Of a DNA stretch of 64,000 nt, positions 5,010 through 59,271 are shown one piece after another; position 1 is the stretch's first letter, and each line of letters opens with the position of its first letter. Source of the stretch: Octopus sinensis (taxonomy: Eukaryota); assembly GCF_006345805.1 (NCBI RefSeq), contig NC_043010.1:59148001-59212000 (forward strand), given 5' to 3'. The translations under genes and the position numbers were made by a program. The notes beneath the pieces are model-generated. The model was not told the origin of the DNA, ran no database searches, and was given only the letters and a program-made list of their open reading frames with translations.

Positions 5010-6960
5010 TTTTTCCTCTTTCTTTATGATCCTAGAATCAAAAGGGCATGATGGGTCGATATATAAGCAACTTCACTTTTCCTTATCCATGATTGTAATA
5101 TCTGGTCTATTGTTTTCTAATTTCTTGTCTGTTTGAATTGGAAAGTCCCACAAGATCTTACATTTCTCCAACTTTAGTTCTCTTTCGACTCGATGATTGT
5201 ACCATGTTTTTTCCAGTTTCAAATCCCCATTTCTGGCACAGTTTCCAGTGTAAAATGTTTACAACCTGGTCATGCCTCCATTTCTTATATTCTTCCTGAG
5301 CCAACTTGGGGCATTCTGTCACAATGTGTGCCACTGTCTAATTCCAAGTCCCATTCTCTACATTTTTCTGACATATTCTTTCCGTTTATATTTTTCCTCA
5401 AGTTGTTTGTTTTCATTGTTTGATCTTGGGCCACTACAATTAGGCTCTGCTTCTTTTTATAATTGCCCCCTTTTTTAACCAAGTCCAAGATTTTGTTCTA
5501 CATATGTCCTCAGTGGCTCTCCAAAATTAGCCATGCAGAGGTTTCTCTTTGATTGATCTGATGTGCTCTATTTGTATTTCATTCTTACCTTTTTCTCCTA
5601 TTATGCTCTTCGTCACCTGTGCTTTATTAACTGCCTTTAGTCATTTTCCCTGTGCTACTTACTCTGTAAATACTCTGCTAGACTTTTCCTTTCCATTTGT
5701 ATAACTTATTCTACTGCTATTAAGCCTCTTCCACCCTGGTCTCTCCTCAGGTACAGCAGTTGATATCAGCTTTTGGATGGTGGAAAAAGGAACAACTTCC
5801 TAGTTTTTCTGTCAAGTTACTTTCTATCATTTTTGGTCCAGGCTATAATTTCAACTCCATATCTGATTAAGCTAACTGATCTTGAATTTATTGTTTCAAT
5901 AAAAGTTTTGGAATTCACCTTTGACTACAATAATTTTCTCACCCTCCTTGTGTACTCCCAACTGGTAATTTATTTCATTTCTTCATTTTTTAAAATCTCA
6001 TCTGCTTCCAGTATTCCCAAGTACTCGTACCACTGTCCTTTCTCAACCACTCTCATTCTTTGACCATTTGGCATTACAATTCCTTGGCTTCTTTCAAATC
6101 TTCCTTGTTTCATTTTCAGTATTGCCCACTTTTCTATCCCAAATTCCATACCTACATCATTTGAGAAAATGCAAATAGTATGTACAAGACTTTCAGGCTG
6201 TTTCTCATTTATATCATCCGTGAAAAGGAGATGATTTATCTGACCATTCCCTTTTCCCAAATTGTAGGCTATTTTAACATTACATAGTATCCTGGCCAAT
6301 ATGAATAGTAATAGAGATAAGCTATCACCTTGGAATATTCCACATCTGATGTTCACTGTTCCAAGTTTTTGTTTCCCTCTGATCAATTCCAATATTTCAT
6401 CATTATCATCGTTTAGCGTCTGCTTTCCATGCTGGCATTGGTTGGACGGTTCAACTTGGGTCTGGGAAGCCAGAAGGCTGCACCAGGCCCAGTCTGATCT
6501 GGCAATGTTTCTATGGCTGGATGCCCTTCCTAACGCTCCATGTTTTTTGCTATTCCAAACATGCTCATTGCTTCATTTATCCAACTATGTGGTACCATGT
6601 CATATGCGTTTTTGTAATCTAGCCCTGCTACATTCAGTCCCATCAATCTGTGTCTACAATTTTTAATTATCATTTTATCAATTAATGAGTGATCTTTTGT
6701 TGCCCTACTTTGTTTCCTGCATCCTTTCTCCTCTTCTGGAAGTAGATTCTTATTTTCCAGACGGTTGTATAATTCTTCTGCTAAGATACCAGTCATAAGC
6801 TTCCACATTAGTGGTAAATAGGTTATGAGTTGAAAATTTGATGCCAAGTTCCCTTTTATTAGCATCTTCTTTCAATTTTGTTGCCATTTCTTGCCGAGTG
6901 TCTTCCCAACACCTAGGGCAAAGAAACTTACTGTATACATTGGTAGGCCATCAAAATAAA
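5010..6960 (-). mobile_element. Decayed RLE-type non-LTR retrotransposon (R4/Dong-like): RT, zinc knuckle and restriction-like endonuclease; interrupted by an RTE-tail repeat at ~6406-6540
   Basis: Minus-strand peptides include LDYKNAYDMVPHSWI, GIFQGDSLS and INHLLFTDD (RT); LIVVAQDQ...KCR (pre-zinc-knuckle region); and ILWDFPIQTDKKLENNRPDITIMD...IDPSCPF (RLE). Many stops and frameshifts; boundaries approximate. Confidence 0.8.
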
Positions 6961-10129: not shown

Positions 10130-10415
10130 GATTGTTACCAACGTCGCCTTACTGGCACCTGTGCCAGTGGAATGTGTAAAAAGATTCGAGCAAAGTCGTT
10201 GCCAGTACCGCCTGACTGGCCCCTGTGCTGGTGGCACGTAAAAAGCACCCACTACACTCTCGGAGTGGTTGGCGTTAGGAAGGGCATCCAGCTGTAGAAA
10301 CTCTGCCAGATCAAGATTGGAACCTGGTGCAGCCATCTGGTTCACCAGCCCTCAGTCAAATTGTCCAACCCATGCTAGCATGGAAAGCGGATGTTAAACG
10401 ATGATGATGATGATG
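10130..10415 (+). mobile_element. RTE-3'-tail short interspersed repeat with (GAT)n tail (representative copy)
   Basis: Core GGTTGGCGTTAGGAAGGGCATCCAGCTGTAGAAAC...CATGGAAAGCGGATGTTAAACGATGATGAT. Further copies at ~6406-6540(-), ~22370-22630(+), ~23840-24075(-), ~31815-32091(-), ~32200-32500(-), ~33295-33425(-), ~37110-37392(+), ~44745-45003(+) and ~46195-46350(-). Confidence 0.85.
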
Positions 10416-13040: not shown

Positions 13041-13357
13041 CAACTGCTGTTATCATAGTTCTGGTTCTCATTCTTGTTCTTCAGTGTAATTATCCAAAAA
13101 CAATTTAGTGAATTAAATAAAATCTCTTTCATAGGATACATAGCTTTTGCTATTTTTCTCAGTTTTGCAGATTCGTTGAAACAAATTATTGACTTCTTCA
13201 TAAAATCTATAAATGCAGTTTTCTAAAGTAATAGATTCACATTTCTAATGTAACTGATAACTATATTTTAAAATGATTTACTTCTGATAATAAATAGAAA
13301 TGTATTTCTCTTCTTAGGTTAACACATTTGATTTTTTAAACAAGACCAACTATCAAC

Positions 13358-16290
13358 ATGTTCCTGTCGTTGTCCATTGTATTGTCGCTGGTCCACTGTG
13401 TCCTGACCATAGACCTTACCTACCACGTGGAAGAAGAGAGAAGTCCAGGAACATATGTAGCAGACATTGCTGCTGATTCTAAACTTTTAGACAATGTTAA
13501 ACCATCTGACCAACATTTGATAACATTCAGTCAATTCAAACGAAAGGTGGCACAGTTATTTAATATCACCAAAACAGGTAAACTGTACACTGCTCAGACA
13601 CTGGATGCAGAAGATCTCTGCACATTCAACAAAGAATGTTCTAGAATTATGAAGGTTGTTGTCAATAAAGGAACCAGTGTTTCAAAAATATTAAAAATCA
13701 AAATTGTAATAGAAGATATCAATGACCATGAACCTAAGTTTCCAAAAGCTCAAATTTCTTTGAAATTCTACGAGACAGATGGAAAAGGCACTAAACAATC
13801 TCTGCCAAATGCCATAGATAAAGATGTAGGATTCGAAAATTCCTTAATACAATATAAATTGAAATCAAAGAATGGAGAACCATTCTCTCTGTCAGTCTCT
13901 AAAAGAGCTGATGGTATTTCTTCTCTTAAAATAGTTTTAAAAGAATCATTAGACAGAGAAATCAAAGATACATATTTATTACAAGTCATAGCTAAAGATG
14001 GAGGTTCACCAGCAAAACAAGGTATTTTAAATATAAATATTTCAATAATAGATTTGAACGACAACTCACCTGTATTTTCTAAACCTTTATATAATATATC
14101 CTTACAAAGTACACATCATAAAGCCAAACCCATCATTGTTTTATCCGTGACAGATGCTGATTCTGGGGAAAATGGTAAAATTACTTTCCATTTCAGTCCA
14201 AAAACATCAGATTTAGCAAAAAGCTATTTTGAAGTAAATGAAAACAGTGGAAGCATTTTGTTAAGTAAATATACAAGTTTAGGAAAAAAGAAAACTTATG
14301 AACTATTTATAGAGGCCAGAGATGGGGGCAGCCCTCCTCTCAGTTCTATAGCAACAGTCCTCGTAAATGTTATCAACCAACACAATAATCCTCCATCTAT
14401 TGATATTGATTATGTTTCTGCAATCAATGACAACACAGCTACCATCTCTGAAAACATTAAAGTCGGTAGTTTCATTGCTTATGTGATGGTCACTGACAAC
14501 GATGTGGGACAAAATGGAGAGGTCAGCTGTGATATCAAACATGATACATTCAAACTACAGTCAATGGGATCTAAAGAATATAAAATCATTCTAAACAAAC
14601 CAGTGGACAGAGAAACACAAGGACACTATAACATTCCTGTCTCTTGTCAAGATAAAGGATTACCTCCTCTTAAAAGTGTTAAAAGCCTCTCTATCCAAGT
14701 GACTGACATCAACGATGTACAACCACAGTTCACCAAAGATACATTCCAATTCCTCACCTACGAAAACAAAGATAAAGACTTCCCTATTGGTTTTGTCAAT
14801 GCCACTGACCCCGATCTTGGATCTGCTGGACAACTCACGTATTCTCTGCTGCGTAAAGAAAAATCCAATCTCCCATTTCTCATCACCAGTTATGGCTTCA
14901 TTTCAGCGACCATGTCATTGGACAGAGAGAAACAAGATGTGTATAAGTTTGAGGTTTTTGTCAAAGACAATGGAAGCCCATCTCTGAATGACACAGCGAA
15001 TGTTGTTGTTGAGATTCTAGATCAAAATGACAATGCTCCGTATTTTACATATCCTAGTAGTGACCCTTACACGCTAAATGTGCAGTACCATCCGCAGAGT
15101 AAGAGTGACATCACAGTTTTGAGAGCGTCTGATGGGGACAGTGGAAACAATGCTTTCCTCAGATATGCAATCATACGAGGAAATGATAAACAGTTGTTTA
15201 GTATGAACTCACACAGTGGTGCTTTATCCTTCTCCAGACAAGTTTATCTAAATGATGCTGGAAGTTATGAGCTGGTGTTTGTTGTGAAGGACAGTGGTAG
15301 TCCAGTTCAGTCGTCAACAACTAGTGTCACTTTGGTATTGGCTGTTAGTAACGAGACATCACCAATGTCGAAGAGTGGACCTTTACAATCTTCAGGTCGG
15401 GTCCATATGACATGGGTTATTATCATTGTATCATCAGCAGTAATAATATCAGTGGCTATTGTTGTTTCTATAACGCTGTGTATTATGAAATGTATTAAAC
15501 ACAGAGATAACACAGCTGTTGCCACAAAGAATACAGCCTACCAAGGTAGAGCAGAGATGAAACAATTGTTGTACCAGACTAACACTTCTGTTGCTATGTC
15601 GAGGAATGCAGAAGAGATGGTGAAGCGGAATATCTATTCTGAGAGATCCAAGAGTGAATGTTATGCAGAAGGTCAGCTACAGAACAAATATGAATCTTCA
15701 GTTCAGTCGAGAACTTTACCAAAACCTACCCCAGTAAGTGGAAACATTACATTTTCTCTCTGTAAAAGTGAACAATGAAATCTCTTTGAATATGTTTTAA
15801 CTTCAATAATACATTCCAATATTAAATTGTTCTCTATCCATGTTGATTGTAACTTCCATTGTTTGGTGTCTTCTCACATTTCTTTATCGTTTGTTTGTCA
15901 ACAGAAATACTGTCAACCTGTTGTGGTGACATCAAGTGATGATGCTGTGGAAGATAATGCTACTATGGTTTGTAACTATACATCAGATACAATGTCATCC
16001 AAGAGAAGTGGTAGACATGGAGACTTGAAACATTATGAAGAAATACCAGGAGTATCAGGTTAGTAAATAAACTGGTTTTTTTGACTTCATTTATATTTCA
16101 TGCATTGACATTTAATAATTATCCCTAATTCTTCAATGCATATTAAATTGTTGCCTATGTATACCTATGTTTTAGGATATTGTCAGAAATGTCTATTTTC
16201 TTCTAAATTTCAGATCAAAGTATTTATAAGAACAATGACACAGCTACATCAAAAGATTCCAGTGAAGAAACACCAGTGAAACATGTCTAA
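13358..16290 (+). CDS. Protocadherin G1 (signal peptide, 6 cadherin repeats, TM, cytoplasmic tail; ~868 aa after splicing)
   Basis: ORF 13358 has a hydrophobic leader and DINDH/DLNDN/DINDV/DQNDN linkers, LDRE, DxD and DGG-P motifs, and TM WVIIIVSSAVIISVAIVVSITLCIM. Coding exons are 13358-15733, 15905-16058 and 16214-16290. The acceptor TTCTTAG|G (13316-17) lies 40 nt upstream of the ATG. Confidence 0.95.
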
Positions 16291-23830: not shown

Positions 23831-25044
23831 TGACAGAATACAGGTGTCATCATCATCATCATCATCAGTGTTTAATGTCCACTTTTCATGCTGGCATGGG
23901 TTGGACAGTTTGGCTGAGGACTGGCAGGCCGGGAGGCTGCACCAGGCTCCAATCTGATCTGGCAAAGTTACTACAGCTGGATGGTCTATCTAATGCCAAC
24001 CACTCCGAGAGTGTAGAGGGTGCTTTTTACGTGCCAGTCAGACAGCACTGGCAGTGACCATGCTCAAATGGTGCTTTTTATAGATACACACACACATATA
24101 CACATACATATGCATACATATATATATATATATCTACACATATACATATATATATATACACACACACATATATATGTATATGTGCATATATATATGTGTG
24201 TGTGTGTGTGTTGAAAGAAAAATTGGAAATTAGAGGAATGAGATGTAGTGCACAAGTAAAATGGACTGCACTGGTACAGATATATGATGCATATGGATGA
24301 GGACATCCGAAAAAGAAGTGCCAATGTCTTAAGAGGAATGGAGCTTGCTACAAGGGGACAGGGAACAGGCTTATCTCAGAATCCTGAACCTCTTGAAGCA
24401 CAATGTGCATCATACACAAGTGGCCCCCACTCATCCCCATCACCCAACATCTTTTTCACTTCTGTGTTCTGCTGCTGTAAATAATTCTGAGCAGAACTGC
24501 TTACTCCACCAACTTTCCCCTGATACCACTTATGTTCTTCTCTACCTGGAATCATTTCACATGATATCCACCATTCATTCTTGACACTGTCCTCTCCACC
24601 CACATTTCACACTGATCACTCACCCAAGTCACCATTTTATCTCTCTTTTCATTGTCCCCATGCAATATGCTTGCCTCTTGCAACCTGCCCAACCACACAT
24701 CATCATCTCTCTCTCTCTCTCTCTCTCGTTCACTCTCTCATTCTCTCACATCCTTCTGTCAACTGTATTATTTTTATTATACTACTCCCTATCCTGACTT
24801 ATTCTGCACTGTCTCCATGGGCTATGCTTAAGTCTTGTTAGTGGCATGAGAAAACACACCCAGTGCATTTCTATAAGTGGTTAGTGAGAGGAACACATTC
24901 AACCTTGGTAACCAGGCCAAATGGCTTACATCAGGATCACCCATACCAGAATGGAGGACAAATGTAAAAGGAGGATGGTGATGATGATGATACTAGTGGC
25001 AGTGTCTGTGCTACAGGGGAATTATTAGCCACTCTAATAGGATC

Positions 25045-26628: not shown

Positions 26629-29600
26629 ATGTTCCTGTCATTGTCCATTGTACTGTCAATGGTCCACTGTGTGCTGACCATAGACCTTACCTACCATGTG
26701 GAAGAAGAGAGAAGTCCAGGAACATATGTAGCAGACATTGCTGCCGATTCTAAACTTTTAGACAATGTTAAACCATCTGACCAACATTTGATAACATTCA
26801 GTCAATTCAAACGAAAGGTGGCACAGTTATTTAACATCACCAAAACAGGTAAACTGTACACTGCTCAGACACTGGATGCAGAAGATCTCTGCACATTCAA
26901 CAAAGAATGTTCCAGAACTGTTAAAGTTATTATAAAGAAAGTGGATAGTTTCACAAAAATATTAAAAGTCAAAATAGTAATAGAAGACATTAATGACCAT
27001 GAACCGGAATTTCCAGAAAAACAAATCACTCTACAATTTAGGGAAGGTGATGGGAGAGGAAGGAAAAAGTCGATTCCAAATGCCATAGACAAAGATGTGA
27101 GTTATCAAAATTCTTTCATTGAATACAAACTTAAAAAATCTGATGACTCATTTTCCCTGTCAGTGTCTAAAAGAGCTGATGGTATTTCCTCGTTAAATAT
27201 TGTTTTGAAAGAAAAATTAGACCGAGAGATGAAAGCGAAATACAATTTAGAAGTTATTGCTAAAGATGGAGGTTCTCCATCTAAACAGAGTGTGTTAAAT
27301 GTTGAGATTGTTGTCGAAGATGAGAATGATAATCCACCTGTATTTTCAAAACCCCTTTATAATATTTCAATTAGAACCACACACGACAAGACAAAACCTA
27401 TTCTTACTTTGTCAGTGACAGACAAAGATATTGGATCCAACAGTAAAATTACTTTCCATTTCAGCCCCAAAACTTCTGATTTGGCAAAGAAATATTTCGA
27501 ATTGGATAAAAAGACTGGCAAAGTATTTTTATCTAGAATTTCTAGTTTGAATGAAAAAAATACTTTTGAATTATTTATAGAAGCCAGAGATGGAGGCAAT
27601 CCCCCAATCAGTTCTATTGCAACAGTTTTAGTAAATGTTATCAATCAACACAACAATCCTCCATCTATTGATATTGATTATGTTTCTGCGATCAGTGACA
27701 ATACAGGTACCATCTCTGAAAAGATCAAAGTCGGTAGTTTCATTGCTTATGTGATGGTCACTGACAATGATGTGGGACAAAATGGAGAGGTCAGCTGTGA
27801 TATCAAACATGATACATTCAAACTACAGTCAATGGGATCTAAAGAATATAAAATCATTCTAAACAAACCAGTGGACAGAGAAACACAAGGACACTATAAC
27901 ATTCCTGTCTCCTGTCAAGATAAAGGATTACCTCCTCTCAAAAGTGTTAAAAGCCTCTCTATCCAAGTGACTGACATCAACGATGTACAACCACAGTTTA
28001 CCAAAGATACATTCCAATTCCTCACCTACGAAAACAAAGATAAAGACTTCCCTATTGGTTTTGTCAATGCCACTGACCCTGATCTTGGATCTGCTGGACA
28101 ACTCACATATTCTCTGCTGCGTAAAGAAAAATCCAATCTCCATTTCTCATCACCAGTTATGGCTTCATTTCAGCGACCATGTCATTGGACAGAGAGAAAC
28201 AAGATGTGTATAAGTTTGAGGTTTTTGTCAAAGACAATGGAAGCCCATCTCTGAATGACACAGCGAATGTTGTTGTTGAGATTCTAGATCAAAATGACAA
28301 TGCTCCGTATTTTACATATCCTAGTAGTGACCCTTACACGCTAAATGTGCAGTACCATCCGCAGAGTAAGAGTGACATCACAGTTTTGAGAGCGTCTGAT
28401 GGGGACAGTGGAAACAATGCTTTCCTCAGATATGCAATCGTACAAGGAAATGATAAACAGTTGTTTAGTATGAACTCACACAGTGGTGCTTTATCCTTCT
28501 CCAGACAAGTTTATCTAAATGATGCTGGAAGTTATGAGCTGGTGTTTGTTGTTAAGGACAGTGGTAGTCCAGTTCAGTCGTCAACAACTAGTGTCACTTT
28601 GGTATTGGCTGTTAGTAACGAGACATCACCAATGTCGAAGAGTGGACCTTTACAATCTTCAGGTCGGGTCCATATGACATGGGTTATTATCATTGTATCA
28701 TCAGCAGTAATAATATCAGTGGCTATTGTTGTTTCTATAACGCTGTGTATTATGAAATGTATTAAACACAGAGATAACACAGCTGCTACCACAAAGAATA
28801 CAGCCTACCAAGGTAGAGCAGAGATGAAACAATTGTTGTATCAGACTAACACTTCTGTTGCTATGTCGAGGAATGCAGAAGAGATGGTGAAGCGGAATAT
28901 CTATTCTGAGAGATCCAAGAGTGAATGTTATGCAGAAGGTCAGCTACAGAACAAATATGAATCTTCAGTTCAGTCGAGAACTTTACCAAAACCTACCCCA
29001 GTAAGTGGAAACATTACATTTTCTCTCTGTAAAAGTGAACAATGAAATCTCTTTGAATATGTTTTAACTCAATAATACATTCCAATATTAAATTGTTCTC
29101 TTTCCATGTTGATTGTAACTTCCATTGTTTGGTGTCTTCTCACATTTCTTTCTTGTTTGTTTGTCAACAGAAATACTGTCAACCTGTTGTGGTGACATCA
29201 AGTGATGATGCTGTGGAAGATAATGCTACTATGGTTTGTAACTATACATCAGATACAATGTCATCCAAGAGAAGTGGTAGACAAGGAGACCTGAAACATT
29301 ATGAAGAAATACCAGGAGTGTCAGGTTAGTAACTATTAAATATACTGTCAGTTGTGAAGAATTCATTTCAACAGTTTACCCTCAAGTTTCTGGGGAATAT
29401 TTTGTGTCAACAATTTCTGGAATAAATCTGTTTTATTTATTATTTATCTATTCTTAACTAATGAGATAACAAGTTGCTCAAATTTTCAGTTCATAAACTC
29501 CAGAATATATGTTTTATTATAATATATTATTTGTTACTTTCTCATTAAGCAATTAATTAATGAAATCTGCAAGTCTGTGATTTTGTAATGCATGTTTCCA

Positions 29601-29690
29601 ATCTAAATTCCAGATCAAAATTTATATAAGAATAATGATGCAACTACGTCGAAAGAGTCCAGTGAAGAAACTCCAGTCAAACATGTATAA
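26629..29690 (+). CDS. Protocadherin G2 (most divergent EC2-EC3), with a 1-bp frameshift at ~28140: pseudogene or consensus error
   Basis: Exons are 26629-29000, 29171-29324 and 29614-29690, with the acceptor at 26567-68. AATCTCCATTT replaces the AATCTCCCATTT seen in the other copies, which splits the ORF into 26629..28254 and 28179..29045. The rest of the frame is intact. Confidence 0.85.
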
Positions 29691-31781: not shown

Positions 31782-32573
31782 TCACTCCTATATTTTTCAA
31801 TCATATTTTATTCTATCATCATCATCATCGTTTAACGTCCGCTTTCCATGCTAGCATGGGTTGGACGGTTCGACTGGGGTCTGGCTAGCCCGAAGGCTGC
31901 ACCAGGCCAGTCAGATCTGGCAGTGTTTCTACAGCTGGATGCCCTTCCTAACGCCAACCACTCCGAGAGTGTAGTGGGTGATTTTATGTGCCACCGACAC
32001 AGGTGCCAGACGAGGCTGGCAGACGGCCACGCTCGGATGGTGTTTTTTATGTGCCACCGACACAGGTGCCAGACGAGGCTGGCAGACGGCCAAATCTATA
32101 TTTACCAATATTCTGTTGTAAATTTATATTTCAATTATTTTGTGAACCGTTATTACTTTGTCAGTATATATACATTGTATGTATAAAGTTACGTTGAATA
32201 TCATCATCATCATCATCTAGTGTCTGTTTTCCATACTGGCATCAGTAAGATGGTTTAATTGGAGCTGGTAAGCCAGGGAGCTGCACCAGGTTCCTGTTTG
32301 TTTTAGCGTGGTTTCTACAGCCAGATGCTCTTCCAAATGCCAGCCATTCCACAGAGTGAACTGGGTGTCTTTTACATATTACCAGCACGGGTGTCTTTTA
32401 CATGTCACAAACATGGGTACTTTTTATGTGTCAATGGGTGCCTTTTATGTATCACTGAAATGGGTGCTTTGCACGTGTCACTGGCACTGCACACAACTAC
32501 AATTTCATTTAGCTTCATACGTCTTCTCAAGCACAGCAAATCACCAAAAATTTTGGTCTTTTATACATTTTTT

Positions 32574-36025: not shown

Positions 36026-37551
36026 TGAGAATTTACAAAAAAGCAAAAGACGAAGATGGGTGTGTAAACAACAAACATGTATTAGTTTAACACTCAGGAA
36101 GTGAGAAAGTCTTTTACGCTCTTTGACAGGAAGGAACACAGAAACAAACAGGGAGAGAAAATAGAAACGGGTTTAGCGATATATATATATATACATGCAC
36201 ACACACATACGTTTTATATACAGACACACTGAGATAGATATGGGTATGTGTATCGGTGTCACTTTGTCTTGACATCATATGATTGTAGTGATTGTTTAAA
36301 TTATGCAAGCATAGAAGGACAGATGTTAAAACAACAATGTCAAAGATGGAGTATCATTGTCATTGAAGAGGTTTGTCAATTAAAAAAAAAAGCATTAGCA
36401 AGGTCTTTAATGTAGATTAAAAATTATTGAAAATATCTATTGAACAATTATTGAAGCTAGAAAATCATTTGAACATTTCTCCGTCACAAATTTGGGAAAC
36501 AGTATGAATTGTTGAGTCCATAGGGGATCAAAAAAGTCAGCACTTCATACCTTGTCATCAGGATTTTGCTTTGTTATTTTTCTGGTCATGTCATGTAAGT
36601 CAACAAAAAATAAATCCCTCTACATGGGCTCTTGATTTACTAGAATTAGCAGCCAAATCATCTTAAAATTATATCTTACTCTCTTACAAAAACAGAAAGG
36701 TCACATTGCATGATATACTTGTAAATGCACTGTATGGAAAAAAAGATAGATATATATAAGATGAGTGCAACTTAAATGCCTTTTATCATAGATCTTCTCA
36801 GTCAGGACTGACCCAAGGCTACGTAACAACAACAGGCCACAAGGCTTGGCTGACAGCTTGTGTTTTGTCAGCCACATGCCACATGGTCACAGCAAATGAG
36901 GAAGTATCTCACAGAGATGGGGATTGACTGGGGCACTGCTCAGACTGTTGCCCAGGATGACCTTGGCAAATACAGATAAATAGTGGATGCAGCAATGCAC
37001 TGCCCCCTTCTCTCATACCACTTTAATGGAGTACCTAGTTGTTGATGTTTTTTTTTTTCAATTCTGTACTTACACTGGAACAAATCACTTCATATGCTCT
37101 TTAATCTATCACCTGACTGGCTCCCATGCAAGTGACATGTAAAAAGCACCATTGGAGTGTGGTTGATGCCAGTAACGCCTGACTGGCTCTTGCGCTGGTG
37201 GCACATAAAAAGCACCCACTACACTCTTGGAGTGGTTGGCATTAGGAAGGGCAGGCATCCAGCTGTAGAATCCTTGCCAGATCAGATTGGAGCCTGGTGC
37301 AGCCTCCTGGCTTGCCAGACACCAGTCAAACCATCCAACACAGGCCAGCATGGAAAACAGACATTAAATGATGAAGAGGATGATGATGATGACATGAAGT
37401 GATAGATTTATATATTCCTATTATTTCAAAGATATCTGTGTAATTTAAACTGTTATTTATTTCTCATTACAATTCTTTAATGAATTTGTATTTCTGTTTT
37501 AGGTCCCATCAACATATTCAAACGTTTTTAAGTATCCATCATTCTACAATA

Positions 37552-40469
37552 ATGTTATTGGCATTGTCCATTGTATTATCAGTGGTCCACTGTGTCCTGA
37601 CCATAGACCTTACCTACCACGTGGAAGAAGAGAGAAGTCCAGGAACATATGTAGCAGACATTGCTGCCGATTCTAAACTTTTAGACAATGTTAAACCATC
37701 TGACCAACATTTGATAACATTCAGTCAATTCAAACGAAAGGTGGCACAGTTATTTAATATCACCAAAACAGGTAAACTGTACACTGCTCAGACACTGGAT
37801 GCAGAAGATCTCTGCACATTCAACAAAGAATGTTCCAGAACTGTGAAGGTTGTTGTCAATAAAGGAACGAGTGTTTCAAAAATATTAAAAATCAAAATAG
37901 TAATAGAAGATATCAATGACCATCAACCAAAGTTTCCTATAAAGAATATCAACATACAGTTTTCTGAGAATATAGCTAAAGGTGCAAAACAATCAATACC
38001 CAATGCTATGGACAAAGATGTAGGATTTCAGAACTCATTAATACAATATAAATTAAAATCAAAGAATGGAGAACCATTCTCTCTGTCAGTGTCTAAAAGA
38101 GCTGACGGTATTTCTTCGCTTAACATAGTTTTGAAAGAATCATTAGACAGGGAAATAAAAGATAGTTATTTATTACAGGTCATAGCTAAAGATGGAGGTT
38201 CACCAGCAAAACAAGGGATTTTAAACATAAATATTTCCATAATAGATATAAATGATAACCCACCAGAGTTTTCTAAACCTTTATATAATATATCCATACA
38301 AAGCACACATCACAAATCTAAACCCATCATTGTTTTGTCTGTGAGTGATGCTGATTCTGGTGAAAATGGTAAAATTACTTTCCATTTCAGTCCAAAAACA
38401 TCAGATATTGCAAAAAGCTATTTTCTGTTAAATGAAACCAGTGGAAGCATTTTATTAAGGGAATATTCAAGTCTGAGAAAAAAGAAAACCTACGAATTGT
38501 TTATAGAAGCCAGAGATGGAGGCAGTCCACCATTCAGTTCCATAGCAACAGTTCTAGTAAATGTTATCAATCAACACAACAATCCTCCATCTATTGATAT
38601 TGATTATGTTTCTGCAATCAATGACAACACAGCTACCATCTCTGAAAACATCAAAGTTGGTAGTTTCATTGCTTATGTGATGGTCACTGACAATGATGTG
38701 GGACAAAATGGAGAGGTCAGCTGTGATATCAAACATGATACGTTCAAACTACAGTCAATGGGATCTAAAGAATATAAAATCATTCTAAACAAACCAGTGG
38801 ACAGAGAAACACAAGGACACTATAACATTCCTGTCTCCTGTCAAGATAAAGGATTACCTCCTCTCAAAAGTGTTAAAAGCCTCTCTATCCAAGTGACTGA
38901 CATCAACGATGTACAACCACAGTTTACCAAAGATACATTCCAATTCCTCACCTACGAAAACAAAGATAAAGACTTCCCTATTGGTTTTGTCAATGCCACT
39001 GACCCTGATCTTGGATCTGCTGGACAACTCACATATTCTCTGCTGCGTAAAGAAAAATCCAATCTCCCATTTCTCATCACCAGTTATGGCTTCATTTCAG
39101 CGACCATGTCATTGGACAGAGAGAAACAAGATGTGTATAAGTTTGAGGTTTTTGTCAAAGATAATGGAAGCCCATCTCTGAATGACACAGCGAATGTTGT
39201 TGTTGAGATTCTAGATCAAAATGACAATGCTCCGTATTTTACATATCCTAGTAGTGACCCTTACACGCTAAATGTGCAGTACCATCCGCAGAGTAAGAGT
39301 GACATCACAGTTTTGAGAGCGTCTGATGGGGACAGTGGAAACAATGCTTTCCTCAGATATGCAATCATACAAGGAAATGATAAACAGTTGTTTAGTATGA
39401 ACTCACACAGTGGTGCTTTATCCTTCTCCAGACAAGTTTATCTAAATGATGCTGGAAGTTATGAGCTGGTGTTTGTTGTGAAGGACAGTGGTAGTCCAGT
39501 TCAGTCGTCAACAACTAGTGTCACTTTGGTATTGGCTGTTAGTAACGAGACGTCACCAATGTCGAAGAGTGGACCTTTACAATCTTCAGGTCGGGTCCAT
39601 ATGACATGGGTTATTATCATTGTATCATCAGCAGTAATAATATCAGTGGCTATTGTTGTTTCTATAACGCTGTGTATTATGAAATGTATTAAACACAGAG
39701 ATAACACAGCTGCTGCCACAAAGAATACAGCCTACCAAGGTAGAGCAGAGATGAAACAATTGTTGTACCAGACTAACACTTCTGTTGCTATGTCGAGGAA
39801 TGCAGAAGAGATGGTGAAGCGGAATATCTATTCTGAGAGATCCAAGAGTGAATGTTATGCAGAAGGTCAGCTACAGAACAAATATGAATCTTCAGTTCAG
39901 TCGAGAACTTTACCAAAACCTACCCCAGTAAGTGGAAACATTACATTTTCTCTCTGTAAAAGTGAACAATGAAATCTCTTTGAATATGTTTTAACTTCAA
40001 TAATACATTCCAATATTAAATTGTTCTCTTTCCATGTTGATTGTAACTTCCATTGTTTGGTGTCTTCTCACATTTCTTTATTGTTTGTTTGTCAACAGAA
40101 ATACTGTCAACCTGTTGTGGTGACATCAAGTGATGATGCTGTGGAAGATAATGCTACTATGGTTTGTAACTATACATCAGATACAATGTCATCCAAGAGA
40201 AGTGGTAGACACGGAGACTTGAAACATTACGAAGAAATACCAGGAGTATCAGGTTAATAACTGCATTAGCAATACTTTGCAAATAATTTTAACAAGTACA
40301 AATTGCTGTACACTGTAAAAATAATGTCACCATTCTTTCCATCTATTAACGTATTGATATCCTGGCAAAATCTATTTTCATTTGAATTTCAGAGCAAAGT
40401 TTATATAAAAACAACGATGCATCTGCTTCGAAAGATTCCAGTGAAGAAACACCAGTGAAACATGTCTAA
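37552..40469 (+). CDS. Protocadherin G3 (~868 aa)
   Basis: The true ATG is 37552 (MLLALSIVLSVVHCVLT); the ORF-track start at 37480 lies upstream of the acceptor TTTTAG|G (37501-02). Exons are 37552-39927, 40099-40252 and 40393-40469 (EQSLYKNNDASASKDSSEETPVKHV*). Confidence 0.95.
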
Positions 40470-41886: not shown

Positions 41887-44800
41887 GTAAGTTTCCATTT
41901 AATCTCTTTTATAATTTTGTTTTATGTATCTCATTGAATCAGTTAGAGATTGTTGTAACAAGATGTTAGAATCTTACATATTTAATATTAACAGGAGAAC
42001 AAAGAGATTCACCAATAATTTACACATCATTTTCATACATATAACCCATACTATTTTCTTTTCATACTTCATTTAATGATGTTGATTGAGATGTTTCATA
42101 TTTAGACTTTATTTCATTGCAACAGTATGTGTCTGTGTAACATTTGTTACAGATATTGATCACTAACAATAGAGAACAATCTCTGCAGTATATAGCAGTA
42201 ATGCGTGCATTTGCTTTTGTTGTAAGGAAGATGTGATGTTGTGTCTATTTAGCTGATGCTGTAAGAAAGTTATGTGAAGATTTTCATATAAAAATATACT
42301 GAAGGATATTTTCTTTAAAGTTGTGTATAATGTGTCAAGTATTAGCAGTGATAAGCTAATGGTATGTTAAGGATTATGGTTGGGTATAATGGAGGACAGT
42401 AAGACTGACAGCTATCAAGAAGTGAATAGAAATATTAGCATGTTGTAGACTACGTCAATGTAGAAAATGTTTATATTGCATATGTTTGCTTCTAAAGCAT
42501 ATTTGTAAGTCATAGTAATATGTTATTTCTTTTTGAACATTCTCTCCTATTTCCCTCTATGATTTATTTATAGTCACAATTTTTTATCTCCTTTTTACAC
42601 TGTCCCTTCAATTTAATTATAGATTTTTGAATTTTTATAACATCAGAGCTTTAAATTTACGGAAATTATGTTTATCTCAATTATTAATCATGTTTACAAT
42701 TCAAAGTGAAACTTCTTCATCATCATCTCATTGTCAAATATATTTCTCAATATTCTGTATCCACAAAGATTTCTGTTTGAATATCTAAACATTTAGTCAC
42801 CAAAATTTGATGCCTGCCCTGAACGTCTTAAACTGTTACACTTTACTCTTTGTTCTTGTAAAACATTCACTTTTCATATTAAACAGCTTTTGTCATTTAT
42901 TCAGTTGTCAGATTTCTGACTTGAATCTCTCATCATTATTTGAGTCCTATTTCTCAAAAACAATAACATAAATGCTTACATTGAAAATAGCCATTGTGAA
43001 TCAGTTTTAAACTACATGACAAGCATGGTAGTGTGTATAAGACATCCACTTTTGAACCATGTGGTTAGGGCTTTAGTCCTGTAGTATGGATGTTGTTAGC
43101 TGACGTCCTGTATGACAGCCACAGATCAACCGATATCTTGTGAGTGAAATTGGTAACTGGAAACTGAAGAAACTCACAGTGTGAGTGGGTTTGTATTTCC
43201 CTTCCTCTTCATGTGTTCTTACTAAATGTAAACAAAGGCCTCACTCTGTCCTCAGCTTGCAGTCCATCATGAAAGCATAGCCAGGCGTCTTGATATGCCT
43301 TCACATGTTCTATAATCTTCATAAACGAAAGGCTCATTCAAACAGTGTCGTTATCTTAATTGCTTCATATAACCATACTCAGGCTGTTTGTTGTATGATA
43401 GACTGGGGTGAGGGTTGTGGGGGTCATTATCTTGCGTGGAAACAAAGAGAGGCATCAAGAAGGGCATCTGGCCATAGAAACTCTGCTCCAACATAGTCTC
43501 ATCTGCTCGTCTGACTCATTACCAAATTTTCACGAGGCATCTCTGTTTATTCACTAGAAACATGTTATAAAGAGGTGATTTTTACAAACCTTTTAGCTCT
43601 AATGATATGAAGTTGCAAATATTTAAAACAATATCCAATGCCATGTGCTAACCTTTTAACTACTGGGCTTCCATTGGACCCTCTCTTGAAACTTAACTGA
43701 GAAGGGCATATTTTTACTTTTCCTCTTCCATATTGGGACACTATTCTCTGCATTGAAGGGAGGTTGTCTGTTAACTTACTCTTCAGAGAGAGGGTTCTTA
43801 AGGAATTAGCACATGATGTTAGATTTAGCTTTAAATATTTCATCTTTATATTATTATAGTTAAGTGTAGGGAGAGCATTTCAGCTTTCATTATATGTTAC
43901 TAGTAAGGCGGCAAGCTGGCAGAATGGTTAGCATGCCAGGCGAAATGCTTAGCAGTATTTTGTCTGCTTTTATGTTCTGAGTTTAAATTCTGCCAAGGTC
44001 AACTTTGCCTTTCATTCTTTCGGGGTTGATAAATTAAGTACCAGTTGAGTACTGGGGTCGATATAATTGACTGGTCCCCTTCCCCCAAATTTTCAGGGCC
44101 TTGTGCCTAGAGTAGAAATAATTATATGCTACTAGTGAGTAAAAAATGTGTGTCTTGAAGGTCTGGCAGTATAAAAGTTATAGCAGTGACAGGAAGTTTA
44201 AGGACTTCACATAAATATATCTGGAATATAAAAGATTCCTGGTTATTAATTACCAAAAAATCAGTCCTGAAAACTGAGACACTGAGTCAATGTGAGTGAA
44301 ATGTTATCCAGGCAGTCATTTTGTGAAAATATAAATTATTTGTCCACAGGATAAGTAAGCACTCCTGGTCTCCATAAGTGAGAATTTGGATTTTGTATGG
44401 TTAATATTTTCATTGAAGTGCAAATGCCCAATAAAAGCCATGCATAAAGCATGATTTGTGGATCAGTTTAGTTCTGCTGCAGATACGACGATTGATATTG
44501 AAAGGAAAGCATTATAGTGGTGGTAGTGGTAGTGGTAAGGAAACTAGAGGATCATTAAAAGCTTTTACATCCTCCTAATGAGTAAATCCAATATTAGATC
44601 ATCTGCTCTCTAATAAAAAAAAAGTCTCTTTTAATTCTTTATAAATTGAAATAATTCCCATTATCTTAATTATGTATCCAAATAATAGCGATGGATTAAA
44701 AAATAAAAGAAGTTATTGTTGGATTACTTCATTGTCAGTATAAGCTGGTGCCTGTGCCGGTGGCATGTGTAAAAAGATTCGAGCGAGGTCATTGCCAGTA

Positions 44801-45379
44801 ACGCCTGACTGGCCCCCATGCCCGTGGCACATAAAAGCACCCACTACACTCTCAGAGTGGTTGGCGTTAGGAAGGGCATTCAGCTGTAGAAACTTTGCCT
44901 GATCAGATTGGAGTCTGGTGCAGCCATCTGGTTTGCCAGCCCTCAGTCAAAATCGTGCAACCCATGCTAGCATGGAAAGCGGACATTAAACGACGATAAA
45001 GATGTAAAACTTGTGGAAAATAATATTTCCATTACGAGTCCATTTAATATCCGCTTTAAAAATCACTCTAGATTAATAGTTGCTGAATATTTGTTGTTCA
45101 GATTGTTAACAAAGATGTACCAATTTCAAAACCTTCTTCCAGTAGAGAAGATGCTTTCATACATAAACGTGCAAGAGGCATACGGTTTGGCTAACCCGTA
45201 TTCCTCTTAGTATTTGCATCAGGAAATTCTTTTGAATGAGTGATGCCACTGGAGTTGATGGAATTGGCATGTTCTGGGCAGAAAATGTGTGTAGATTAAG
45301 TAATGGAGGGAGTTAGAGAATGTGGTAGATGAGTTTAGCATAGGTTAATCATAGGCAACAAGATAGCAATATTGATTTG

Positions 45380-47039: not shown

Positions 47040-50000
47040 ATGTTCCTGTCATTGTCTATTGTATTGTCACTGGTCCACTGTGTCTTGACCATAGACCTTA
47101 CCTACCATGTGGAAGAAGAGAGAAGTCCAGGAACATATGTAGCAGACATTGCTGCCGATTCTAAACTTTTAGACAATGTTAAACCATCTGACCAACATTT
47201 GATAACATTCAGTCAATTCAAACGAAAGGTGGCACAGTTATTTAACATCACCAAAACAGGTAAATTGTACACTGCTCAGACACTGGATGCAGAAGATCTC
47301 TGCACATTCAACAAAGAATGTTCTAGAACTGTGAAGGTTGTTGTCAATAAAGGAAGAAGTATTACAAAAATATTAAAAATCAAAATAATCATAGAAGACA
47401 TTAATGACCATCAACCAAACTTTCCTATAAAGAATATCAACATAGAGTTTTATGAAGACATTGGTAAAGGTGCAAAAAGATCAATACCCAATGCTATGGA
47501 CAAAGATGTAGGATTTCAAAACTCATTAATACAATATAAATTAAGATCAAAGAATGGAGAACCATTCTCTCTGTCAGTGTCTAAAAGAGCTGATGGCATT
47601 TCTTCTCTGAAAATAGTTTTGAAAGAATCATTAGACAGAGAAATGAAAGATACATATTTATTACAAGTAATAGCTAAAGATGGAGGGTCACCAGCAAAAC
47701 AAGGAATTTTGAATATAAATATTTCTGTAATAGATGTTAATGATAACCCACCAGAGTTTTCTAAACCTCTCTATAATATATCCATACAAAGTACACATCA
47801 CAAATCTAAACCCATCATTGTTTTGTCTGTAACAGATGCTGATTCTGGTGAAAATGGTAAAATTTCTTTCCATTTCAGTCCAAAAACATCAGATCTAGCA
47901 GAAAGCTATTTTCAGTTGAATGAAACAAGTGGGGAAATTTTCGTGAGTAAATATTCAAATTTAGGAAAAAAGAAAACTTACGAATTGTTCATAGAGGCCA
48001 GAGATGGAGGCAGCCCTCCTCTCAGTTCCATAGCAACAGTCCTCGTGAATGTTATCAACCAACACAACAATCCTCCATCTATTGATATTGATTATGTTTC
48101 TGCAATCAATGACAACACAGCTACCCTTTCGGAAGACACCAGAGTTGGTAGCTTCATTGCTTACGTGATGGTCACTGACAATGATGTGGGACAAAATGGA
48201 GAGGTCAGCTGTGATATCAAACATGATACATTCAAACTACAGTCAATGGGATCTAAAGAATATAAAATCATTCTAAACAAACCAGTAGACAGAGAAACAC
48301 AAGGACACTATAACATTCCTGTCTCCTGTCAAGATAAAGGATTACCTCCTCTCAAAAGTGTTAAAAGCCTCTCTATCCAAGTGACTGACATCAACGATGT
48401 ACAACCACAGTTTACCAAAGATACATTCCAATTCCTCACCTACGAAAACAAAGATAAAGACTTCCCTATTGGTTTTGTCAATGCCACTGACCCTGATCTT
48501 GGATCTGCTGGACAACTCACATATTCTCTGCTGCGTAAAGAAAAATCCAATCTCCCATTTCTCATCACCAGTTATGGCTTCATTTCAGCGACCATGTCAT
48601 TGGACAGAGAGAAACAAGATGTGTATAAGTTTGAGGTTTTTGTCAAAGACAATGGAAGCCCATCTCTGAATGACACAGCGAATGTTGTTGTTGAGATTCT
48701 AGATCAAAATGACAATGCTCCGTATTTTACATATCCTAGTAGTGACCCTTACACGCTAAATGTGCAGTACCATCCGCAGAGTAAGAGTGACATCACAGTT
48801 TTGAGAGCGTCTGATGGGGACAGTGGAAACAATGCTTTCCTCAGATATGCAATCAAACAAGGAAATGATAAACAGTTGTTTAGTATGAACTCACACAGTG
48901 GTGCTTTATCCTTCTCCAGACAAGTTTATCTAAACGATGCTGGAAGTTATGAGCTGGTGTTTGTTGTGAAGGACAGTGGTAGTCCAGTTCAGTCGTCAAC
49001 AACTAGTGTCACTTTGGTGTTGGCTGTTAGTAACGAGACATCACCAATGTCGAAGAGTGGACCTTTACAATCTTCAGGTCGGGTCCATATGACATGGGTT
49101 ATTATCATTGTATCATCAGCAGTAATAATATCAGTGGCTATTGTTGTTTCTATAACGCTGTGTATTATGAAATGTATTAAACACAGAGATAACACAGCTG
49201 CTGCCACAAAGAATACAGCCTACCAAGGTAGAGCAGAGATGAAACAATTGTTGTACCAGACTAACACTTCTGTTGCTATGTCGAGGAATGCAGAAGAGAT
49301 GGTGAAGCGGAATATCTATTCTGAGAGATCCAAGAGTGAATGTTATGCAGAAGGTCAGCTACAGAACAAATATGAATCTTCAGTTCAGTCGAGAACTTTA
49401 CCAAAACCTACCCCAGTAAGTGGAAACATTACATTTTCTCTCTGTAAAAGTGAACAATGAAATCTCTTTGAATATGCTTTAACTTCTATAATACATTCCA
49501 ATATTAAATTGTTCTCTATCCATGTTGATTGTCACTTCCATTGTTTGGTGTCTTCTCACATTTCTTTATCGTTTGTTTGTCAACAGAAATACTGTCAACC
49601 TGTTGTGGTGACATCAAGTGATGATGCTGTGGAAGATAATGCTACTATGGTTTGTAACTATACATCAGATACAATGTCATCCAAGAGAAGTGGTAGACAT
49701 GGAGACTTGAAACATTACGAAGAAATACCAGGAATATCAGGTACATTAGCTATTATGTTGATGTTGTTTTTTCATCTCAAGTGTGGATTTTTGGTAACAG
49801 CCGTTTCTAACAGTTATATTGTCAGTTGTAAAGAATTCATTTCTACATTTTACCCTCATGTTTTTGGGGTATATTTTGTATCAACAATTTTTGGAATACA
49901 TCTGTTTTATTAAGTATTTATCTATTTTTGTGTAATTAAATCATAAGTTGCTCAAATTTTCAGTTTATTAACTCCAGAATATATATTTTATTATAATACG

Positions 50001-50161
50001 TTTTTTTTTTATTTTTTCATTAATCAATTAATGAAATCTGCAAGTCTGTGATTCTGTTATGCCTGTTTCCGATCTAAATTCCAGATCAAAATTTATATAA
50101 GAATAATGATGCAACTACATCGAAAGATTCCAGTGAAGAAACTCCAGTCAAACATGTATAA
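47040..50161 (+). CDS. Protocadherin G4 (~868 aa)
   Basis: Acceptor at 46982-83. Exons are 47040-49415, 49587-49740 (donor GTACAT) and 50085-50161 (DQNLYKNNDATTSKDSSEETPVKHV*). Confidence 0.95.
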
Positions 50162-50692
50162 TACTTTGCATTATGTAAATACAAGATATAGACTGTTCAG
50201 TACACACACACACACAGACACACACACACACACACACACACATTTGCTATAGACTCTATATAAGAATACAGATTATCAAAGGCAAAAAGATTTTGTAGAT
50301 AAGTCATTATTTTTTTTAATTATCCCTTGATTGCAAAATAGGTGGGGTTTTTAATATAATGAAAGAATGTTTATTACACTCCATAGTACACCAAATTTTC
50401 TATGTGTTGTTGATAACAATAACCAGAGATTATATTCTCTATGGTTTGCCATGTTTACTCTGTCCTTTGCGGGGCTTGTGTAATTCTCCTTCTGATGGTG
50501 TAAAAGTACATAAGGGAGATTTTTTATTTATCCATGAGATGAAGTTAGCTGACATCTTTGGAGTATTATTATTAACTATAAATGCTTTATAACTTAAGCT
50601 GGCAGCCACTGTGGGAAAGCATGATCATCACAACCTCTAAATATATGACCATGTTCATCAGGGAAAGAAATCAATATGAAGGGAGCAGCTTC

Positions 50693-50726
50693 ATTGGTCT
50701 CCTGTTTCGATCACTCGACCAATCAG
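50693..50726 (+). promoter_or_regulatory. Putative promoter P5 paired CCAAT boxes
   Basis: ATTGG at 50693 and CCAATCAG at 50719. Confidence 0.6.
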
Positions 50727-50906
50727 ATTCGGGATAAAACACACAACAATTCACTAACAAAGCCAAGCATTCACATCACTAATGTTATTATCCCAAACAG
50801 TTATGTTCTGTTTCAGTATAAACATAATTCTAGCTATTTAAATATATATCCATGTAAATAGTAAACATCTTCTTTGAGGACAAATACATGCACAGAATAC
50901 TATTAG

Positions 50907-51109
50907 GTGGATGTACTCTTACAAACATTCAACTTCAGTGACACATGCAACCCTCTCCTAGCAGCAGACTCTCTGCCTGACGTGCTACACTACTCCATCA
51001 CCATAACAGCCATTGTCACACCATTACAGCAGCACTTACAGTGGATCTTTCTACAACAATACATCTTTCTCTTTCTCACTGAATAACCAATGATATAATT
51101 ATTAAAAAG
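50907..51109 (+). other. Leader exon copy 5 (to G5)
   Basis: Same block with a variant first ~20 nt (GTGGATGTACTCTTACAAAC). Donor at 51110. Confidence 0.75.
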
Positions 51110-58200: not shown

Positions 58201-58333
58201 TAATGAAATCTGCAAGTCTGTGATTTTGTAATGCATGTTTCCAATCTAAATTCCAGATCAAAATTTATATAAGAATAATGATGCAACTACGTCGAAAGAT
58301 TCCAGTGAAGAAACTCCAGTCAAACATGTATAA
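55269..58333 (+). CDS. Protocadherin G5 (~868 aa)
   Basis: Acceptor at 55215-16. Exons are 55269-57644, 57816-57969 and 58257-58333. Confidence 0.95.
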
Positions 58334-58854
58334 TACTTTGCATTATGTAAATACAAGATATAGACTCTTCAGTACACACACACACACACACACACACACA
58401 TTTTGCTATATACTCTATATAAGAATACAGATTATCAAAGGCAAAAAGATAATATAGATAAGTTATTATTTTTTTCTTTTTTAATTATCCCTTGATTGCA
58501 AAATAGGTGGGGTTTTTAATATAATGAAAGAATGTTTATTACACTCAATAGTACACCAAATTTTCTATGTTTTATTGATAATAATAACCAGAGATTATAT
58601 TGTATATGGTTTGCCATGTTTACTCTGTCCTTTGCAGGGCTTGTGTAATTCTCCTTCTGATGGTGTAAAAGTACATAAGGGAGATTTTTATTTATCCATG
58701 AGATGAAGTTACCTGACATCTTTGGAGTATTATTATTAACTATAAATGCTATAACTTAAGCTGGCAGCCACTGTGGGAAAGCATGATCATCACAACCTCT
58801 AAATATATGACCATGTTCATCAGGGAAAGAAATCAATATGAAGGGAGCAGCTTC

Positions 58855-58888
58855 ATTGGTCTCCTGTTTCGATCACTCGACCAATCAG
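58855..58888 (+). promoter_or_regulatory. Putative promoter P6 paired CCAAT boxes
   Basis: ATTGG at 58855 and CCAATCAG at 58881. Confidence 0.6.
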
Positions 58889-59068
58889 ATTCGGGATAAA
58901 ACACACAACAATTCACTAACAAAGCCAAGCCTTCACATCACTAATGTTATTATCCCAAACAGTTATGTTCTGTTTCAGTATAAACATAATTCTAGCTATT
59001 TAAATATATATCCATGTAAATAGTAAACATCTTCTTTGAGGACAAATACATGCACAGAATACTATTAG

Positions 59069-59271
59069 GTGGATGTACTCTTACAAACATACAACTTCAG
59101 TGACACATGCAACCCTCTCCTAGCAGCAGACTCTCTGCCTGACGTGCTACACTACTCCATCACCATAACAGCCATTGTCACACCATTACAGCAGCACTTA
59201 CAATGGATCTTTCTACAACAATACATCTTTCTCTTTCTCACTGAATAACCAATGATATAATTATTAAAAAG
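59069..59271 (+). other. Leader exon copy 6 (to G6)
   Basis: Same variant as copy 5. Donor at 59272. Confidence 0.75.

Follow-up and report, generated by a model that had tools for sequence, protein, structure and literature searches.

Cephalopod protocadherin expansions are often invoked as a convergent route to large brains, and such an expansion was reportedly published by Albertin in 2015. Delta protocadherins bind through antiparallel dimers of their extracellular cadherin (EC) repeats EC1-4. Clustered protocadherins (Pcdhs) bind in the same way (PMC5001838, PMC5106212), and regional gene conversion that spares EC2-EC3 is established for the vertebrate clusters, as summarised in PMC4978886 with reference to Noonan 2004 and Wu 2005. 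Mouse Pcdh-alpha paralogs, for example, are 96, 69, 59, 85, 98 and 84% identical from EC1 to EC6 (PMC4978886). Phylogenies place the cephalopod protocadherin expansions as independent of the vertebrate clusters (PMC9068888, PMC4978886); cephalopods expand the family by full gene duplication (PMC9068888), and the clustered copies have been called "extremely similar", with recent duplication or gene conversion suggested (Styfhals 2019, PMC6339937; Albertin 2022, PMC9068888). Here we describe a 64-kb stretch of the Octopus sinensis genome (GCA_006345805.1, CM016872.1, approximately 59,148,001-59,212,000; hereafter the window, with positions counted from its first base) that carries seven tandem protocadherin genes, G0 to G6, all on the + strand and spaced 8-13 kb apart (blastn, tblastn). 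In these genes, two constant blocks that are homogenised by concerted evolution flank a variable block containing EC2 and EC3.

Like mammalian Pcdh-alpha and the teleost, coelacanth and lizard clusters, the octopus array is a tandem series of six-EC units. In vertebrate clustered Pcdhs and octopus alike, silent sites are most strongly homogenised from EC5-EC6 onward, EC2-EC3 is spared, and EC2-3 holds the phylogenetic signal. The parallel with the vertebrate clusters drawn in a first-pass annotation of this DNA is a real one, and the closest match is the mouse Pcdh-alpha profile (PMC4978886), in which EC1 and EC4-6 are likewise constant and EC2-3 variable. Unlike in the vertebrate clusters, each octopus unit is complete, with its own intron 1, exon 2 and exon 3 and without shared constant exons, and the homogenised tract takes in an intron and a second exon. 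In further contrast to those clusters, no diversifying selection was detected in the octopus variable block. A search of the 0.8-1 kb upstream found no promoter element of the conserved sequence element (CSE) kind. The array is not orthologous to the vertebrate clusters, since delta-2 and clustered types are about equally distant from it (26-33% identity); it shares gene family and chromosomal super-cluster with the published cephalopod expansions (PMC6339937, PMC9068888). In the papers on cephalopod protocadherins that our literature search covered, we found no account of homogenised domains, of a cross-genus test or of a mosaic variable block.

Constant and variable blocks along the protocadherin genes

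The complete gene G1 serves as the reference for all coordinates, and three blocks were defined on it: A covers aa 18-95, V covers aa 96-368, and C runs from aa 369 through intron 1 to where exon 2 ends.

13358-16290, + strand: G1, complete, 868 aa (splice sites, spliced translation, Pfam)
13358-15733, + strand: G1 coding exon 1
13409-13642, + strand: block A, EC1 strands A to E, homogenised among paralogs
13643-14461, + strand: block V, EC1 F-G hairpin, EC2, EC3 and first EC4 strands, not homogenised
13730-13807, + strand: hot spot of V, aa 125-150, EC2 strand A, A-B loop and start of strand B
14462-16058, + strand: block C, EC4 strand B onward, EC5, EC6, transmembrane segment, proximal tail, 171-nt intron and 154-nt exon, homogenised
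15734-15904: G1 intron 1, 171 nt, GTAAGT donor
15905-16058, + strand: G1 exon 2, 154 nt
16214-16290, + strand: G1 last coding exon, 25 aa (16214-16287) and then the stop codon, not homogenised

G1 is a protocadherin of the cadherin superfamily. Its translation has a signal peptide followed by six EC repeats, with a transmembrane segment and a tail behind them, and matches Pfam Cadherin_2 (aa 20-103) followed by five Cadherin domains (E = 1.8e-73). The calcium linkers read DINDHEP, DLNDNSP, NQHNNPP, DINDVQP and DQNDNAP, and the hydrophobic segment WVIIIVSSAVIISVAIVVSITLCI after EC6 forms a single membrane pass. The transmembrane segment and the tail gave no Pfam match. The first-pass annotation was right about the 171-nt intron and the 154-nt exon; its constant "signalling tail" needs correction, as the last exon (25 aa) is variable and the tail has no signalling domain recognisable by Pfam, so that homology lends the term no support.

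The constant/variable/constant layout that had been proposed for these genes is borne out by sliding identity and by variable-site counts. Among G1-G5, 7 of 234 sites vary in A, 303 of 816 in V and 36 of 1595 in C (V versus C, Fisher's test p = 2e-118), and exon 3 varies at 17 of 77 sites, with a blastn identity of 84-87%. Sliding identity is 0.66-0.70 5′ of the ATG, 0.95-0.996 at 13380-13650, 0.67-0.88 at 13650-14460 (0.54-0.67 between copies in the hot spot), 0.97-0.996 at 14460-16060 with the intron included, and about 0.7 past 16060; the drops fall within a few bases 5′ of the ATG and directly past the exon 2 donor. Residues 18-95 are, as previously noted, the same in all six copies with a 5′ end (non-synonymous divergence, dN, of 0), and the four peptides quoted to illustrate the variable region were correct. 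The 0.5-1.3 kb downstream of the repeat units are 74-85% identical and not homogenised, so these flanks and exon 3 give the baseline age of the repeat unit. Intron 1 of the Octopus copies is variable at 7 of 171 sites (4.1%) compared with 4.5% of third codon positions; being as uniform as these, it indicates that the homogenising process acts on DNA.

An alignment of 73 octopod protocadherins (50-93% identity to G1) has a strong consensus in EC1, EC4-EC6 and the transmembrane segment and a weak one in EC2-EC3. At the protein level, the same profile may hold for the whole octopod expansion.

Concerted evolution of the constant blocks across octopod species

The copies of the window were compared with the O. 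vulgaris orthologue of G1 and a distant O. vulgaris copy, five Argonauta hians copies and partial O. bimaculoides copies. Ten A. hians paralogs have the same layout and the same block boundaries as O. sinensis, as do the O. vulgaris copies. Within the constant blocks, A. hians carries many substitutions that are common to all its copies and absent from all Octopus copies, such as SDQQ for SDQH, NGQV for NGEV, LLHPQKSTLPFV for LLRKEKSNLPFL and TYGIISGNA for RYAIIRGND. Block C differs at 0.4-2.4% of nucleotides within a genus versus 8-12% between genera, with a synonymous divergence (dS) of 0.02-0.06 within a genome versus 0.31 between genera; for A, dS is 0.02-0.11 within O. sinensis versus 0.25 between O. 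sinensis and A. hians, and 0.05-0.10 in the within-genome estimates of the cross-genus comparison.

In neighbour-joining trees, C resolves into genus clades and V into a cross-genus clade of G2-type sequences, each with 100% bootstrap. The V block of O. sinensis G2 differs by 26% from that of its neighbour G1, compared with 8% for a copy in O. bimaculoides and 18.5% for one in A. hians, and this V type occurs in copies of O. bimaculoides, O. vulgaris and A. hians. The V and C trees thus conflict, each with full bootstrap support. The comparisons as a whole bear the hallmark of A and C evolving in concert while V escapes, and because V types are shared across genera, V lineages predate the Octopus-Argonauta split. 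At the level of sequence comparison, these data demonstrate that A and C undergo concerted evolution within each genome, as a regionally restricted homogenisation. The "selective homogenisation" of the first-pass annotation is strongly supported in this respect, with constant blocks that are concerted per genome and V lineages that are older than the split.

The same comparison bears on two other ways to obtain near-identical blocks. Purifying selection alone, extending to silent sites (for example through RNA editing structures) and acting without conversion, would fit a dN near 0 in A and C as well as A. hians exons that are more uniform than intron 1. It is already contradicted, and scarcely credible, given that A and C differ between genera (dS 0.25-0.32) with many fixed amino-acid changes common to all paralogs of a genus, and that intron 1 of Octopus matches silent coding sites in its uniformity. 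Alternatively, the constant blocks could have been collapsed or cross-polished in the PacBio assembly. Two 1-nt deletions in three-base runs within block C of G0 and G2 suggest residual long-read errors, and in the O. bimaculoides assembly, which is Illumina-based, the gaps (runs of N) coincide exactly with block C. Such an artefact is nevertheless very improbable: the same layout recurs in three independent assemblies of three species with genus-specific constant sequences, the A. hians boundaries are identical, and 29 of the 36 variable sites in block C are copy-specific singletons.

The variable block as an old recombinant mosaic

Along V, the nearest relative of a copy switches. In nine O. 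sinensis copies, the pairwise homoplasy index (PHI)/four-gamete test gave p < 0.0005, with incompatibility in 52-58% of the informative site pairs; every pair of these copies is at least 9% different in V and at most 1.2% in C. One transfer can be placed by comparison of G1 with its positional O. vulgaris orthologue, from which it is 33-51% different in the hot spot and 4.2% different (95.8% identical) in the flanks. The corresponding O. vulgaris region is only 0-3% from the positional O. bimaculoides orthologue, and therefore it was O. sinensis G1 that acquired a 5′ V patch from elsewhere. Among the sampled copies, the one nearest to this patch, at 4-9% difference, lies about 30 kb past the window end (Os_H2, P0133). 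As donor of the patch this copy was rejected, being still 9% different in the hot spot, and the true donor lies outside the sampled copies. A second candidate mosaic, P0132 as a natural G3/G4 chimera, has no gene on record; it is probably a fused annotation model and was not used.

Substitution rates were estimated pairwise among O. sinensis copies by the Nei-Gojobori method. In A and C, dN is close to 0 and dS is 0.02-0.12, whereas V has a dS of 0.31-0.57 among G1 and G3-G6 and 1.0-1.35 against G2, with a dN/dS (omega) of 0.12-0.20; silent divergence in V is thus 5 to 20 times that of A and C. V had been described as diverging strongly and mostly non-synonymously. The first part stands for G2, which is 26-28% different from the other copies, and for the hot spot, but not for G1 and G3-G6, which are only 9-15% different among themselves across V. 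The second part does not stand: synonymous exceed non-synonymous differences in 14 of 15 pairs among the five G1-type copies, as between G1 and G3 (64.5 versus 43.5), and it is the pairs with G2 that are slightly non-synonymous-heavy (112.8 non-synonymous versus 100.2 synonymous for G1-G2). Nor is there detectable positive selection behind the diversity of V, which is better described by old divergence, purifying selection and a patchy reshuffling by conversion.

The 26-codon hot spot is the only segment with more non-synonymous than synonymous differences, at an omega of 0.3-0.8, the upper value coming from one close pair. It consists of a few discrete sequence types, each of which is kept across genera. 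Within a type, omega between genera is 0.04-0.08, as for G2 and the A. hians copy Ah_c (8 synonymous and 3 non-synonymous differences, omega 0.06) or G1 and Ah_d (omega 0.05), and between types dN reaches 0.34-0.55. Residues that are alike within a type and unlike between types are those nominated as specificity residues in vertebrates (PMC5001838, PMC5106212). The hot-spot pattern argues against mere relaxed constraint, and selection for distinct V types is supported indirectly by these comparisons.

A recent duplication after which EC2-EC3 diverged fast, by adaptation or hypermutation, would account for the raw excess of non-synonymous differences in the hot spot and for the omega of up to 0.8 in one close pair. 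It is already contradicted by the 5- to 20-fold silent divergence of V relative to A and C, by V types that form cross-genus clades with 100% bootstrap, and by unit flanks that are only 74-85% identical and show the units to be old, and we regard it as highly improbable. On the cross-genus data, the singletons and the intron uniformity, we rejected recent duplication with positive selection, selection without conversion, and assembly collapse.

Predicted fold and position of the variable block

An AlphaFold2 (AF2) monomer model of EC1-4 of G1 has a mean predicted local distance difference test (pLDDT) score of 86.3. Its best Foldseek matches are EC1-4 of Pcdh18, 17, 10, 19, gammaC4, alpha4 and gammaA1 (E about 1e-45, 26-33% identity), and the best phmmer matches are 6vg4, 6vg1 and 5dzv. 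The model has the four-repeat fold of the delta-2 and clustered EC1-4 dimers (6vfr, 6vft, 6vg1, 5dzv, 5szl, 7jgz; E about 1e-45), and the EC3 Phe-X-Phe loop, helical in alpha and gamma isoforms, is predicted to be helical in G1 too. G1 differs from the solved structures by a six-residue insertion after EC4 strand A and by an EC1 F-G loop that is three residues longer.

With strands assigned from the AF2 model, V extends from EC1 strand F (aa 95-104) to beyond EC4 strand A′ (aa 360-364). Its two ends correspond to the EC1 F-G hairpin (beta6-beta7 loop) and the EC4 loop after beta1a, which touch each other in vertebrate dimers (PMC5001838). The "fixed EC1:EC4 scaffold" of the first-pass annotation is therefore only partly fixed, since V takes in the EC1 F-G hairpin and the first EC4 strands. 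In the model, the midpoint of V (aa ~232) would coincide with the EC2-EC3 linker, the presumed site of the dimer dyad. The hot spot maps to EC2 strand A and the A-B loop at the EC3-proximal end of EC2, and variability alternates along EC2 strand A, as expected for one exposed face.

Interface residues were mapped from the few vertebrate contact positions quoted in two eLife papers, with a mixed outcome. EC4 positions 320, 321, 338, 340, 369, 371 and 373 and EC1 position 41 are invariant in the octopus copies, while EC1 positions 77 and 79 and the loop around position 86 are variable, and position 206 (G1 L233) is L, E, I or V. On this mapping, a place of V residues at a homophilic interface is no more than plausible.

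Conversion, sparing and a possible role in recognition

The explanation that we favour, with a probability of roughly 0.6 for the whole, combines homogenised A and C, an old mosaic V and recognition set by V. Non-allelic gene conversion, possibly together with unequal crossing-over, would keep A (tracts of about 250 bp) and C (about 1.6 kb) near-identical in every copy. V (about 820 bp) escapes, its types predating the Octopus-Argonauta split and each remaining under purifying selection, and conversion would occasionally shift V patches between genes and so create new combinations. Judging from the fold and from vertebrate precedent, the proteins would form antiparallel EC1-4 trans dimers in which V sets which copy pairs with which. 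On the same grounds C would be a shared module providing cis contacts through EC5-6, the membrane anchor and the proximal tail, and selection would discard conversions that equalise two copies in V. Homophilic barcoding by EC2-EC3 is plausible from the fold and this precedent, and by analogy the octopus array might serve neuronal self/non-self recognition.

The concerted evolution of A and C would be the same if V were spared mechanically, with mismatches blocking conversion tracts and no recognition code involved. On their outer sides the tracts stop where homology stops (5′ of the ATG; intron 2 with its indels), the boundaries could be inherited from a common ancestor, and omega is below 1 everywhere, all of which such a mechanism accommodates. 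It fits poorly with the patch in G1, which brought in the most divergent segment (33-51%) and thus indicates that divergence is no bar to transfer if the flanks match. V is, moreover, heavily recombinant, yet no pair of copies is less than 9% different; the hot-spot types are kept across genera at an omega of 0.04-0.08; and the region spared is the one spared in vertebrates. We consider mechanical sparing rather unlikely, though it retains an appreciable chance.

Several observations weigh against the explanation by conversion and selection for recognition. Selective sparing of V is inseparable from a divergence barrier in these data, and omega exceeds 1 in no window of the sliding dN/dS analysis. 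Most of the named vertebrate EC2/EC3 contact positions are invariant in the octopus copies: positions 125, 155 and 253 are invariant or conservative, and variation among the mapped positions is confined to 206 and the EC1 F-G hairpin. Intron 1 of the A. hians copies (approximately 95-110 nt) is clearly more divergent than the flanking exons, and one copy (Ah_e, L006 17062-21128) has an unrelated intron of about 180 nt and an exon 2 that is 4-5% different from those of the other copies. The uniformity of exon 2 must therefore owe something to short tracts of its own or to selection on the coding sequence. The distant O. vulgaris copy (P0008, L005 10001-13964) is 0.5-1% different in the exon-1 part of C and 19% different in A, with an unrelated intron 1 and an exon 2 that is 29% different. 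It shares only the exon-1 part of C, so tract membership varies across the array.

The intron/exon 2 contrast in Ah_e might reflect short tracts that convert separately, selection, or a conversion for which spliced copies served as template.

Genes and repeats of the window

A 23-kb O. sinensis locus is 100% identical to window 16629-39690 and places the window on CM016872.1. Protein searches with the window genes returned octopod protocadherins only. The array comprises at least ten genes across about 107 kb and extends past the window: three further O. sinensis copies lie 20-43 kb beyond its end and in O. vulgaris a related copy is found about 200 kb away from the orthologue of G1, so the array is much larger than the window. 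Besides G1, the window contains the following genes.

1-1361, + strand: G0, 3′ part with the 5′ end cut by the window edge; C block from EC5 on, intron 1, exon 2 and exon 3 (blastn/tblastn)
26629-29690, + strand: G2, most divergent V block ("G2 type") (blastn/tblastn, indel list)
37552-40469, + strand: G3, complete copy (blastn/tblastn)
47040-50161, + strand: G4, complete copy with a 49-nt insertion immediately past the exon 2 donor (blastn/tblastn, indel list)
55269-58333, + strand: G5, complete copy (blastn/tblastn)
62433-64000, + strand: G6, 5′ part (aa 1-522) with the 3′ end cut by the window edge (blastn/tblastn)

The reading frame is broken in this assembly in two copies, both times within block C: in G2 by a 1-nt deletion (CCC to CC) at window position 28142, equivalent to G1 14872, and in G0 by a 1-nt deletion (TTT to TT) at about position 245, equivalent to G1 15197. 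The database model of G2 (P0012, 823 aa) omits 44 aa around the deletion, and its O. vulgaris relative P0123 is intact. The frameshifts could reflect real pseudogenes or long-read assembly errors. In G3, a further in-frame ATG lies 72 nt 5′ of the conserved start (window 37480-37551); it extends the open reading frame (ORF) to 830 aa and has no equivalent in the other copies. The 3.1 kb 3′ of G4 (49815-52903) are 94.5% identical to those 3′ of G5 (57986-61095), compared with 74-85% for other unit flanks, which suggests a recent duplication or a long conversion event spanning the G4 and G5 units.

A splice-acceptor-like TTTTAG|GTTCAA with a polypyrimidine tract precedes the ATG of G2-G6 at -55 to -66, and a similar site is present in G1 at about 13310-13320. 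This placement points to at least one 5′ exon further upstream, so that the large coding exon would probably come second or later in the gene. A search for shared 8- to 12-mers in the 0.8-1 kb that precede six copies of O. sinensis and five of A. hians found no promoter element, only the acceptor-like site; the true promoters probably lie further upstream than the region searched.

A dispersed intergenic repeat of 140-260 bp, with copies in both orientations at 77-89% identity, occurs at six places.

6397-6536, 10152-10414, 23855-24081, 31815-32072, 37138-37384 and 44745-45004, both strands: dispersed repeat

It has no Rfam or tRNA match and is probably a short non-autonomous mobile element. 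Pfam searches of nine intergenic ORFs and Rfam and tRNA scans of the window gave no matches.

Implications for the protocadherin family

Outside V, neither gene trees nor orthology calls nor short-read assemblies of these arrays can be relied upon. In the O. bimaculoides locus (L002, CM046614.1, 2.29-2.35 Mb), 14.4 of 64.5 kb are N, over the block-C parts of genes. Annotations of the arrays are unreliable as well: the O. bimaculoides model P0001 (1504 aa) fuses pieces of several tandem genes, and the O. sinensis model P0135 (5410 aa) is likewise fused.

Natural paralogs that are near-identical outside a 273-residue segment come close to a ready-made domain-swap set for aggregation or biophysical assays, and the few discrete, long-conserved hot-spot types offer a testable handle on recognition. 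The array also indicates that a layout of constant EC1, variable EC2-3 and constant EC4-6 can arise and last without shared constant exons, which argues that the layout reflects protocadherin function and not the build of the vertebrate locus. Tentatively, and as a possibility that we would hold with less than even confidence, octopods may have independently evolved a vertebrate-like recognition system, in which a constant module would be maintained by continual conversion, in place of the spliced-on shared exons of vertebrates, and EC2-EC3 would act as ancient cassettes that are moved in the germline, creating new specificities.

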